NCBI GenBank assembly: GCA_002269645.1
Contig: NIVC01000415.1
Location: forward strand, 310,001 to 374,000
Length of the DNA stretch: 64,000 bases
Direction of reading: 5' to 3'
From: Macrostomum lignano
Taxonomy: Eukaryota
A program made the translations under genes and the position numbers. Under the pieces are notes generated by a model. It was not told where the DNA came from, ran no database searches, and saw only the letters and a list, made by a program, of their open reading frames with translations. This document shows positions 41,301 to 47,300 of the stretch, one piece after another (within the stretch, counting starts at the first letter, position 1; the number at the start of each line of letters is the position of its first letter).

Positions 41301-44300
41301 CCGCTGGCTCCGCCGATGATGACAGGCACGGAGAGCGAGTGCTGCGGCGGCAGGAAGCAGCGGCGTCGACGTCTGTTGCTGCTGGTGCCGCTGCTGGACA
41401 TTGACGACTGTTGTTGGTGGTGTGGCGACATCGGCGCCGATGTGGTCGATACTGGAGAGGCCGGACTCGGCGGAGCAAGGGAGTTGGCGGTCGAATGGGC
41501 ACTTCGGGGCGGCGGTTGCTAAAAAATCAATGCGCATGGCGTGGGTGGCGAAATATGGGCCGGGACAGAAGCTATTTAGCAATAGCATGATTACATATAG
41601 CGAATTTTCCTTGCTAAACTAAACGAAATAATGTTAGAAGGCTTCACAAAGACAAAACCCTCCGTCAACAGACACTGATGCTGAAAAGACAAACACTGGC
41701 TTGCTAATTAAATGTGTACAGATTCTTATTTAACTAAAGCCAGCAAATCAAGCAGCCGGAGACTCAGTAAACTGAGATCTGTCACGAAAAGCCAATTTTG
41801 GTCAAACGGATGCGAAAAAAATTGCAAAGTAAATTCTTCCTGGCTTAACAAATTCTCCAATTTCAAACTTCGCACGTCGCCTCACCCACGCAGTTGCTGC
41901 TCTAAGGACCGTTGCCATTGACAACCCGGGCACGCATATGATTATAAGGGATGGGGGTAGAAGTCAGTCTACAACAGGTGGGAGACTGAATTCAGTTTAA
42001 ATATTCAAGGCACACAAAAGAGCAAGAACTGGGCTGGCTACGCGAGTTGCCGGGACTACTTATGGCTCAGTTGTTTAGTCACGGCCGGGGCCCAATCGAA
42101 AAATATTGATTTCGGGCCTCATGCATTCAAATTCTGGGCGTATTTTTTGTATTGGCAATTAAAAAACTCAACAATTACCGTGTGATAGAGGGCCTAGGCT
42201 ACGGTAAAACAATGAGAATCTCACCGAGCCCTCAGCTTACCATGACGTTGTTTTGCGTGGAAATCACAGAGAGAAAAAACTGGCATCGCTAAATGAGCAA
42301 AAGCGAAAATGAAACAATGGGCCTCCATATGGCCTCACAATTCCAAGCTGGTTTGAATAGAGAAAATAAAACGGAAAAGCCTTTTAGCTATCTGCGATAA
42401 GTAAAAAATAAGTGCTTTTGTTCCCTTTAAGACGAGACAATATATAAAAAGTTATAATCATACATTTTTTTTCAAGCCAGTATTTTAACTTTTAACAAAA
42501 TTCTGAAAAAGTTTCAAAGAGTTGCCTTGGATGCTTGATTCTTGGAAATGAATTGTATTTTTATTGGGGTTGTACTATAAAGCTATCGTAGCGTAAGTTC
42601 GATCGTACATCGGAACTTCAACACTGCGGAGATCGGAGCTAAGGACGATCTTATCTTACGATGGTTTAATAGAACAGGCCCACTGTCACTTCATGCTTTA
42701 TTGAAGTCAAAAAAAAAAAAAAAAAACTATTGAAGATTCGTATTTTCCTGTGCAGCTCAGTTCTTAATGGGCTTTGGACTAATTAAGGCGATGCTTGACT
42801 CCAGTAAGCAGTCATGCCCCTGAGCACGCAAACGCTCACAGATGCGTAGGCAGGCACACACTCACACATGGCATGTACACCACCGACTGTGCTTCGCACG
42901 ACAGGCCCAATTTTTGTGCACGGAATCCGAACCTTTGTACTTATTTAGGATGGAATCTGTAGCTTTCATCTGTACCTACAGAGCCTTAGACAGTCGCATA
43001 CGATAGGCCAGAACTTACCGCGGAGAGGCCCGCCGCGCCGCTGATGTCAATGACGGAGCCCTTCCTGGGACTGGTGCGCAAATTGAACGATGGACTGCTG
43101 CCAGTCTTGCTGATGCGTCGCACAAATTCCTGACCTGCGTGGTGATGAGACGATAGGGCGGCTCGAATGAATTCTTCAATCTGAAACATAATGCGCGCAG
43201 GCGAATGTATCGCGGGTAGGGATCACAAAGCAGGATTTAGAGGCGGTCGAAGCCGGGTCTTATTAGATCAAATCTACGGGACAAAGGAGCTCACGTTTCA
43301 AGCACGTAGAATTTTTGTAATAATGCAGCTAGCTAATTGAACACATCCGTTTGGAACGTGTCTCAGTGCTTGATTTCATTAATATTGAGATTTTGTCCAT
43401 CTTGTCCACGATAGACTAACCTACGGCTAATTCCCGAACTTTGAAATGTCTTAAACTAGCTTGAATCGTGGCACTTCAAAATACGAGCGTAGGTCCTTCG
43501 ATTATTCTTTTATGGTCGTCTTGTCATAATACGAGTATCTTGATTATTCACTTGCATCGACTTCAGACCCATTTAATCTGAGTTCTTTATTCTACGCATG
43601 GCTATGATTCCCTCCTTTTGTATTTAACTGTCCAGACGTAAAGCTTTTGGCTACTTTTGATCGATTTTGTCGTTCCATTAATGAGTGCATGCGTCCCTAG
43701 TTCTGATCCCATTGGTTCATTGCATTGGCAGTGACATGGGCTCAGAGTCCTTGCTGTGGATTTAGCCAATGAGTTTGAGTCGGCAGGGAGGTACATATGA
43801 ACGAGGTGCCCATCGGAAATAGAAGACTGCTTGCATCATTTGCCAGTTTCAACTAGTTTACTAGAAGTTGCAAAGATCTGCAAATCTGCTTGGAGAGATT
43901 CAGTGAATAGGGAACAAAACTCGTAACAATGAGGCCTGCTCTGATAGTGGTACTGCTTGCCATGTGCGCTCTCTGTTTCGAGATTGGATCGGCTCGTGGT
44001 GCGGCTTCTACTGCTTCACTCGATGACAGCGAGACGGCCCATTCAAAGAGGTTTGCCCAAGCCGGAACCTACGACTGGAAGAAGCGCTTTGTCCAACCTG
44101 GAACCTACGACTGGAAGAAGCGCTTTGTCCAACCTGGAACCTACGACTGGAAGAAGCGCTTTGTCCAACCTGGAACCTACGACTGGAAGAAGCGCTTTGT
44201 CCAACCTGGAACCTACGACTGGAAGAAGCGCTTTGTCCAACCTGGAACCTACGACTGGAAGAAGCGCTTTGTCCAACCCGGAACCTACGACTGGAAGAAG

Positions 44301-47300
44301 CGCTTTGTCCAACCTGGAACCTACGACTGGAAGAAGCGCAACGAAGAATGAATAGAGAACAACAATAGCCCGAGCTACAAAGATACATTTTGAAGTAACC
44401 ACTCACTGGCCAGTTCCCTTTTTTCCTAATAGTTGTTAATGTCGTGCAAGCGTGTAAATTGCATGCGAGCCACTCTGTTGGCTGAATAATCTAATTAAAC
44501 TCAGCATCCGTAGTCGATCCAAACTTCTGCAAATCAACTGTTGAGTGCGCATATAAATTTTATTATTGGTGTTGCAGTCAATCATCACCCAAATCATTTT
44601 CTAAGCTGCTATTGTACCGCTTAGAGTAATTAGTAGGCTAACCTTAAATGTTAATCGTACAAGGTAATGCAGTAGAATGGATTCAAGCAGAGAGAGCCAC
44701 AAGAGAAGAGCGGCTCTGTAACGCTCCATAAAAAGTCCGATGCCAAGCATTGATTTTCCTAGTGAAGACCTTCTCCTACAGCTCTCAACAGGCTGGGGGA
44801 GGCTGGATACGGAGGCCATTCAATCGACTCAAGTAGCCCCGCATCGTGTTGCCACTTTTTGTCTTCAACTCAGCCTTTGCAGCCATAAGCGACTCTATCA
44901 GACATGGAGTGGCTGCGGCTCCGGCAAATCGCTTGCCTTCTCCTTCTCTACCGTTGGTTGCATTCTTAACCTAACGATTTCTCACTTCTTTGACAGGTGT
45001 TTTTGAGCCTATAAATCCACCTGATCGAAGTTCAGAATGTTGAACGCGTGCTAAACTGATGACGGATTAGTTCGGGAGTATTATTGAGTATAAAGGAGTT
45101 TGTTCGCCATGATACTGTGCACTGTAATGATGTTAATAATTAATTTCTCCGAGTACTAATTTCTCCGCCTATGACAAACTATGGAAATGCCTAATGTCAC
45201 GAAACTCCTATGCTGGTTACGAATTTGACTTGGACCTTTGGGCAATTAGGATTTTGTCAATCTAACCCGGCTATGATGAATTGTCCTGACTAACAAGGGA
45301 ACAACTTTAAGGCCTCAGAGCAACTTGAACGCGAACAAATTTGATGAAGTAAGCTAAAATGCGCGGGCACCCTTGCGACACAATCTAAATTGGCTATCCA
45401 GGCGTGGTCTGGGAGGACACGGACTAATACATGCAGTTAATCTATTCTAACAAAGCACACAGAGACAGCTCCTCTACTCAAAAGACATTTTGGCCTGTAA
45501 TTGACAGTTTCGACCTGCATGCAATGCTTACAGAAACTCTTTCTAGTTAAGCACGAAAGGAGTCTGAGTTTCGTCTGGCATTACTTTGACTCAGTAGGTT
45601 GAGCACTAAAGAAGGGAATGGGGTATGAGCACAAAGCGAAAAATATTTTCAGTCTGAAGGTCTCGATAAGGCCAGCGGCACGATCACGCACACAAAGGGG
45701 CATGCACGGTAAGCTGACGGCTACACAGCAATGCGGTAATACTACTATAAGTACGACTTATACGCATGAGAGAGTTCATTTTGCCTTTTAATGAAACAGA
45801 ATAAAAGTATACAACAATTAGAAACTATTTGGCTTACTTTACCACTTTCTTTAGATTCCGTCTTTACCAATAACACAGCCTAGACTTAGAACATAGATTT
45901 TTGCAGATTTTCCATTTTAGATAGATTTTAGTTTGTCCTTAAACTTACGACTAGCATTGGCCATCGTGACATATACAATATTACTACTGAACAATGCATT
46001 TGGGAGTTCTAGCTACTAGCACAATGACTTCGTGTCCGCTCGACCTCCTGCTTCACCGCTACATTGACTTGTCTCTACCAGAGTATTCGAAGGAAAAGCG
46101 ATTCTCACAACAGCAAAACAAACAAACAAACAATAAAAATCTATAAAAAGTTCAGGACCAGAGCTGGCCGACACCCCAGAAGATGGAGATGCGGCGTCAT
46201 TGCCAAGACGGCTGGGACTGGCGCTGCCGTGGCTGGTGCGCCTGATAACTGTCACGCTGTCGCAAGAAGTCTGCCTGGTGAGCGACACGCGCCTGGTTGC
46301 CGAGTCTCTGTATCGCGATATGGCATTAGAAATGTGCGACGTCTTGCTGGCCTCCAATAGCCGAGAGATTGCCTCAACCCGCTTGTTCGGCGGGACGCTG
46401 GACAAGTCTGGGGTGTAAAAATTTTTGGATAGCAAAGAAACATTCGCAGCGTGTTGGATTTGTTTTACTGAGCAGCGGCGGCTTTGCGGTTTCCGTCTTC
46501 GACGCAGCAATCGGCAGTCATTAATTGAGCCACATTTAGAAAAATATGGAATATGGAATATTCTCTATTCACGATAGTTTAGATGCCTCGCTAAACATAC
46601 CGCATCATCAAGTAATTTTTGACTGTTTTACAGTTTTCAACTAAACTATCGAAAGTAATAAAATTTTTATCTGTTTTTAACAGACCCGTAAAGTGCATTT
46701 TCGCTCAAAACCTGTTTCAAAACTGTTCTCTAAGACACCAAGTTACCCGTCTTTCTACGAAGTCATCATTTGGTCGTAAATATATTCAATCGACAATAAT
46801 AAAATAAGATTTCATTCTCATAAACTAATGCTGTTCGTTCTCGACTTCAGCATTATGGCCACGAATGCTCCCGCCCAAGTTTGTTCTTCCATAACTGACG
46901 AAGAGTTTTATAGAAAAGTCCTCTCTCATTCATGAATAAACGATTGATACCTCGTTATTATCCAACGCACCCCACATTCCCCTTCTCTCTCTCTCCCCCC
47001 ATCAGCTTCATCTGACTGTCAATATTGCCCTCCCGCCCAGCCCAGCCTCGAGCTACATAGCCAGCACAAGATGCTTATCAAATTTCATCGGCTGAATGAC
47101 TGCAAGCAACCTACAGGCATTTCTCCTTGCAATAAGGCGTCTCCTAAAAAGAAGATGGAAGGCTAAACGAATCTGTCACGTATTATTTACTCGCTAAAGT
47201 GGCTTAAACTGCATTTTCTGAAGCGCGAAGCGATGTAGTAGCAATTAGCTAACAAATGCATAGTCAGAAAGGCAGCTGCAGTTACAATATGTCCATGGAC

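Follow-up and report, generated by a model that had tools for sequence, protein, structure and literature searches.

A putative precursor gene for multi-copy, non-amidated GTYDW peptides in the flatworm Macrostomum lignano

Results

A candidate peptide precursor with eight near-identical repeat units

We analyzed a 64,000-nucleotide stretch of the Macrostomum lignano genome (assembly GCA_002269645.1, Mlig_3_7; scaffold NIVC01000415.1, positions 310,001 to 374,000 of the forward strand), hereafter the window, whose own coordinates are used throughout, and focused on a candidate gene for a secreted peptide precursor at 43929-44351 on the plus strand. GenBank labels this gene hypothetical protein BOX15_Mlig017890g3. 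By the list of open reading frames (ORFs) it is a 140-codon frame with no interruption, a complete single-exon coding sequence (CDS) with its stop codon, and it reads MRPALIVVLLAMCALCFEIGSARGAASTASLDDSETAHS-KR-FAQAGTYDW-KKR-(FVQPGTYDW-KKR)x7-NEE-stop. An earlier reading of this DNA from its letters alone (the original prediction) had described a signal peptide, an acidic spacer, KR, FAQAGTYDW, seven copies of FVQPGTYDW and the KKR sites, and the ORF and its codons show every one of these elements to be correct.

The features of the precursor, all on the plus strand, follow one another closely. A predicted signal peptide, MRPALIVVLLAMCALCFEIGSA (43929-43994), is called from hydropathy, the residues at -3 and -1 and the layout of a paralog described below: Arg2 precedes a hydrophobic core at residues 3-17, G-S-A occupies -3 to -1 and Arg23 comes next, with Kyte-Doolittle 9-residue means of up to 3.4 across residues 3-13 and ~0 by residue 17. 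We infer that the signal peptide is cleaved after Ala22. The translation then gives an acidic spacer, RGAASTASLDDSETAHS (43995-44045), and the first dibasic site, KR (AAG AGG, residues 40-41; 44046-44051), which lies outside the 36-bp repeat and would free peptide 1 at its N-terminus. Unit 1 encodes FAQAGTYDW and KKR (44052-44087), and units 2-8, each of 36 bp, encode seven copies of FVQPGTYDW and KKR (44088-44339), giving a prohormone-like layout: a heuristically called signal peptide, KR before unit 1 and KKR after each of the 8 units. The C-terminal tail NEE and the TGA stop occupy 44340-44351, and candidate polyadenylation signals, AATAAT and ATTAAA, can be read ~135-150 nt 3' of the stop (44485-44499).

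Tandem Repeats Finder reports the array at 44052-44339 with a period of 36, 8.0 copies, 98% matches, no indels and a score of 548. Units 2-8 are the same codon by codon save for one synonymous Pro codon, CCC for CCT at 44277-44279, which bears out the claim that the units are near-identical with a single CCT>CCC. In unit 1, GTC>GCC and CCT>GCC give FAQA in place of FVQP, and this unit is the only one among all those read, here and in the paralogs, to lack the Pro at position 4. A back-translated degenerate pattern for GTYDW matched 8 times in the window (0.22 expected).

Paralogs and near-identical duplicates in M. lignano

Searching proteins with the window product returned two M. lignano proteins, P0001 and P0002. 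P0001 is the GenBank model of the window gene itself (locus L002, window 38929-49351, with the gene at 5001-5423 of that locus). P0002, encoded on a different scaffold (L001, 5001-5402), is a paralog whose flanks are unrelated to the window. The genomic ORF of this paralog encodes a different signal peptide and acidic spacer (GREQDDTQGALEE), a KR at the matching place before peptide 1 (EEKR, then F), eight copies of FSAPGTYDW separated by KKR, RKR or KKK, and a tail that reads SME rather than NEE. When 1.84 billion representative proteins were searched exhaustively with an HMMER profile, one more true relative emerged, P0003 (UniProt A0A1I8HD77), a fragment from the older ML2 assembly with 5 copies of FSAP[QH]AFDW followed by KKR or RKR; the remaining matches that we read had no relation to the family, being repetitive or low-complexity proteins. 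P0003 carries the automatic name 'Coat protein', for which its sequence offers no visible basis. Across the three paralog types the family motif reads F-x-x-P-x-x-[YF]-D-W and then a tribasic site.

The 90% cluster of P0001 also includes gene models at two further loci, L003 and L004, which are collinear with the window at ~98% identity over >10 kb. This duplication fits the known redundancy of the assembly, the sequenced line carrying extra large chromosomes (PMC5730564), and the L001 gene is an older paralog than these near-identical duplicates. Both duplicate genes (L003, 818-1289; L004, 6001-6458) hold 9 repeat units, against 8 in the window, their CCC and CCT units are ordered differently from those of the window, and both have FVQPGTYDW at unit 1, so that FAQAGTYDW is peculiar to the window copy. 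Because unit number and CCC/CCT order differ between copies that are otherwise 98% identical, the repeat array changes faster than its flanks, in keeping with the earlier suggestion of a homogenised, copy-number-variable repeat. Small frame-breaking indels are present in the duplicates, a single 1-bp deletion in L004 and three in L003 (for example, CCAACCGGAACC minus one base), which could reflect either errors of the long-read assembly or true defects in decaying redundant copies. The GenBank model PAA59548.1 (145 aa) at the duplicate loci appears to read through these frameshifts.

Paralog comparison supports a protein-coding repeat

A tandem array by itself is unremarkable here, as the window has ~30 other minisatellites, and the stop-free 36-bp unit is also open in four other frames across both strands. 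What argues for coding is therefore the comparison of the paralogs rather than the ORF. Between the units of the L001 paralog, the differences within the peptides (TCT/TCG/TCA, CCG/CCT, GGA/GGG, ACC/ACG) are all third-position and synonymous, and the spacers vary only between K and R, never losing their dibasic character. When the consensus units of the two paralogs were aligned, the proposed frame kept 9 of 12 residues, compared with 5-7 of 12 in the five other frames. The P-G-T-Y-D-W core is identical in both, as are the KR before peptide 1 and the presence of tribasic sites; the signal peptide and spacer have diverged, yet they retain their hydrophobic and acidic character, respectively. 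Conserved peptides and basic sites alongside diverged spacers are the usual mark of a processed peptide precursor, and the pattern indicates a reading frame under purifying selection. Among the three near-identical copies, the 123-bp non-repeat CDS shows 0 differences where ~1 substitution would be expected, which is not significant and sets aside single-base indels. The paralog comparison argues that the window repeat belongs to a real protein-coding gene, one of a small M. lignano family of predicted multi-copy secreted-peptide precursors.

Annotation of Mlig_3_7 drew solely on RNA-seq assemblies together with a de novo transcriptome that had been mapped, with boundaries taken from trans-splicing and poly(A) data and novel transcripts of <0.5 RPKM (reads per kilobase per million) dropped (PMC5730564). 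The presence of a gene model at the window locus therefore implies indirect transcript support for the gene. The GenBank CDS, PAA83548.1 (92 aa), spans the same 423 bp minus 144 bp, or four units. The L001 model, PAA48327.1, is likewise exactly four units (144 bp) short, and the L004 model, PAA73271.1, keeps 4 of 9 genomic units. We rejected a real intron as the source of the 144-bp gap at the window locus: AGGT, AGGC and ACAT are all missing from the unit, even when it is read cyclically, so that the loss of whole units cannot arise from any canonical splice pair. The L001 array does contain AGGT, and splicing there stays possible on sequence alone. Most likely, the gap in the CDS reflects a short-read transcript in which a perfect repeat collapsed. 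A search for the gene identifiers in supplements to Wudarski 2017, Brand 2020, Grudniewska 2018 and a 2026 Cells paper came back empty, a result of little weight because most of the big tables of Brand and Grudniewska were covered only in part.

Searches for relatives and named families

The original prediction had proposed a search for the GTYDW motif beyond this DNA, and relatives of this type were found only in M. lignano. This held across 1.84 billion representative proteins (E<=0.001) and 5.8 billion proteins (E<=10), and of 213 pattern matches in the JGI metagenomes none was confirmed by tblastn as a relative. Neither the 140-aa product nor P0003 was on record in an exact look-up, and Rfam gave no match anywhere in the window. 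The motif was not in a Schistosoma neuropeptide paper, the text of a Platynereis paper, or precursor supplements on molluscs and lophotrochozoans amounting to 1.25 million characters. A literature search with the motif strings and gene identifiers returned no relevant paper; two flatworm catalogues (Koziol et al. 2016; McVeigh et al. 2009) were outside its reach, and a prior description there is possible. The description of this peptide family as undescribed thus holds in that no named family was matched in the searches run, but not in that its three paralog types already stand in GenBank or UniProt as hypothetical proteins. Both 'undescribed' and 'species-restricted' apply only to the databases and papers that could be searched.

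Two Pfam matches to the product, EZH2_WD-Binding (34.5 bits, cut-off 25) and NOPS (30.7 bits, cut-off 27), are false positives, since their scores sum matches to the 9-residue repeat and no single stretch is significant. A faint match of the same EZH2_WD-Binding/NOPS type is stored for P0022. A scan of the window for bacterial-type promoters and terminators is uninformative for a eukaryote.

We also compared the precursor with known multi-copy peptide families. The FCAP precursors of molluscs and rotifers, like the window gene, combine a signal peptide with many copies (6-28 in FCAP) of one short peptide that is non-amidated, Trp-terminated and directly followed by KR or KKR; in Aplysia FCAP (...ALDSLGGFQVHGW-KR/KKR) the W-KR and W-KKR junctions are as in the window precursor. 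FCAP peptides have been purified as mature peptides. They differ in having 11-13 residues of the form x-L-D-S-L-G-G-F-Q-V-H-G-W and, compared by eye, share only the terminal Trp with FVQPGTYDW. Membership of FCAP was rejected, as the signature LDSLGGFQVHGW is absent and profile searches gave no link. The likeness to FCAP, the nearest analogue, lies in the workings of the precursor rather than in family membership.

The Wamide/MIP (allatostatin-B) peptides and the non-amidated W[I/L] peptides of Platynereis are also short and multi-copy with Trp at or near the C-terminus, and the aromatic-x7-Trp spacing of the window peptide faintly recalls the W-x6-7-W of MIP/WI, a possible lead. Yet MIP peptides need a Trp on the N-terminal side and a Trp-amide (Gly in the precursor), whereas the window peptide has Phe1, a single Trp and no Gly, and it was not assigned to this family. 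Within the same phylum, flatworm FLP/NPF and the npp/spp prohormones of Schmidtea mediterranea show similar precursor logic and PC2-dependent processing, and planarian non-amidated families include pedal-peptide-like peptides, Planarins, spp-12 and spp-16 (Collins et al. 2010). FLP/NPF membership was likewise rejected: the window peptides end in D-W and then K/R without Gly, in contrast to the RF-amide of FLP/NPF. The strings YDW, FDW and DW[KR][KR] were found 0 times in the PDF-derived text of Collins et al. 2010 and its 8 supplement files, including Table S5 and the mass spectrometry (MS) tables, which cover 51 planarian prohormones. Closer in their standing are the orphan precursors NGEW, HIGA, YTL and PY of Platynereis, which have a signal peptide and repeats between basic sites and no orthologs outside the genus; they carry other peptide sequences, and several are confirmed by MS, unlike the window peptide. 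Lineage-restricted multi-copy peptide precursors are routine in neuropeptidome surveys (Platynereis paper).

Discussion

Proposed processing and mature peptides

We favor, at a probability of about 0.6, the reading that this is a single-exon gene for a secreted multi-copy precursor that would be cut to non-amidated 9-mers and released as intercellular signals. While the anatomy of the precursor and its pattern of selection can be read from the sequence, the processing steps proposed here are those of the established prohormone pathway. The signal peptide would direct entry into the endoplasmic reticulum and be removed near Ala22. In the regulated secretory pathway, a prohormone convertase of the PC2/PC1 type would cut after KR (residues 40-41) and after each KKR, and an enzyme of the carboxypeptidase E/D type would trim the basic residues, so that each precursor could yield one FAQAGTYDW and seven FVQPGTYDW. 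Once released, the peptides would act on a putative receptor, probably as neuropeptides or peptide hormones, with the paralogs supplying FSAPGTYDW and FSAPQAFDW as related ligands. The array itself would evolve through unequal exchange and homogenisation.

The choice of convertase follows from the cleavage sites. Because P4 is Trp and not Arg, the KR and KKR sites fall outside the furin motif R-x-[KR]-R, and they appear to fit convertases of the PC2/PC1 type better than furin. A PC2 homolog exists in M. lignano, with a strong to severe RNA interference (RNAi) phenotype (PMC4490696). As no Gly stands before the basic residues, the peptides are not amidated and would carry a free C-terminal Trp; in this the sequence layout supports the earlier view of a convertase-type precursor that lacks amidation. 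Pyroglutamate is likewise not expected, since there is no N-terminal Gln or Glu. FVQPGTYDW and FAQAGTYDW contain no Cys, have a net charge of about -1 and a computed pI of 4.05, with computed [M+H]+ values of 1112.505 and 1058.458, respectively. Sulfation of the Tyr beside Asp is a speculation; the third paralog has Phe at this place, so it would not be a conserved feature.

Several points weigh against the proposed reading. The signal peptide is called by no more than hydropathy and the -3/-1 rule. Transcripts support the gene indirectly, and 4 units are annotated in the CDS where the genome has 8. The literature search gave no peptidomic, in situ or receptor data for these peptides, and no ortholog was found outside M. 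lignano, hence no cross-species conservation, in databases that probably do not hold other Macrostomum transcriptomes. Finally, planarian prohormone genes are expressed not only in the central nervous system but also in marginal adhesive glands, intestine and sub-epidermal cells, so precursor architecture is no proof of a neuronal role; the neuropeptide and signalling-system labels of the original prediction are hypotheses drawn from that architecture.

Alternative readings of the precursor

Because of that same planarian expression, a role in glands, seminal fluid or pheromone signalling is a real rival, in which identical processing would yield non-neuronal peptides from gland, epidermal, gut or prostate cells: a pheromone, a seminal-fluid allohormone or another secretion. 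We regard this as the less likely course, though one to be taken seriously. The architecture is equally compatible with it, being analogous to the multi-copy, KR-spaced precursor of yeast alpha-factor, and the apparent species restriction and copy-number variation would fit fast-evolving reproductive or ecological signals. In M. lignano, the prostate is described as having many transcripts for small secreted products (PMC5977470). On the other side, KR and KKR sites without Arg at P4 are typical of the convertases of the regulated pathway, no expression data point to glands, and the gene identifiers were not found in reproduction-related supplement tables, which says little given their partial coverage. 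An antimicrobial role is unlikely for a peptide so short, acidic and not amphipathic.

A second alternative, that the product is an uncleaved secreted repetitive protein in which KKR serves as a structural or charge element of a small Lys/Arg-rich repeat, seems improbable. It can draw on the fact that no direct evidence of cleavage exists, and tandem-repeat secreted proteins are common in flatworm glands. It does not readily explain why the basic triplet accepts exchanges of K and R while always staying dibasic, or why a separate KR stands outside the repeat, exactly before peptide 1, in both paralogs; moreover, a signal peptide, an acidic spacer and 9-residue units between basic sites make up the classic layout of a convertase substrate.

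A non-coding minisatellite that is open in frame by chance and carries a spurious gene model is very hard to credit: several of the other minisatellites do have a period divisible by 3 and long chance ORFs, and GenBank CDS models are imperfect, but the paralog units vary synonymously with conservation peaking in the proposed frame, the ATG, the signal-peptide-like region and KR stand in frame upstream of the repeat in two paralogs with unrelated flanks, and the annotation is based on RNA-seq.

Implications of a possible signalling peptide family

Returning to processed signalling peptides, we put at about even odds the wider proposal that the F-x-x-P-x-x-[YF]-D-W peptides form an undescribed, Macrostomum-restricted family of non-amidated, Trp-terminated signals, with three paralog types and a receptor of their own. 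In a bolder version, the peptides may pass between mates or be released externally as an allohormone or pheromone. If they are made and active, M. lignano would gain a peptide signalling family, as yet without a name, with three or more genes, and as this flatworm is a transgenic, RNAi-tractable model the family is directly testable. Within Spiralia it would also join FCAP, the known example, in the small group of multi-copy peptides that end in Trp and lack amidation, and supply one more ligand family for the deorphanisation of flatworm orphan G protein-coupled receptors. No general concept would change, as orphan multi-copy peptide precursors turn up in every neuropeptidome survey. A practical lesson is that gene models derived from short reads show half the repeats of such precursors and that Pfam yields above-threshold false matches to them.

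Surroundings of the gene in the window

The window is dominated by long minisatellites (27011-31378, 61345-63363, 56838-58525, 54689-56326, 5899-7001 and 9698-10622), with examples such as 17 bp x 257, 61 bp x 33, 19 bp x 90 and 16 bp x 109, and these account for strong local GC and AT skews. Arrays with a period divisible by 3, and some others, produce spurious long ORFs, for instance at 51843-52903 and 59821-60935. At 34692-35948 on the plus strand, an uninterrupted 418-aa ORF matches the full profile of Glyco_transf_21 (ceramide glucosyltransferase-type; E 6.7e-45) and is probably an intronless or single-exon gene ~8 kb upstream of the peptide gene. On the minus strand, an ORF at 1521-2093, probably a single exon from a larger gene, aligns with the C-terminal half of the rod domain of intermediate filaments (PF00038, E 5e-22) and directly adjoins a (TAAC)x119 microsatellite at 1042-1518.

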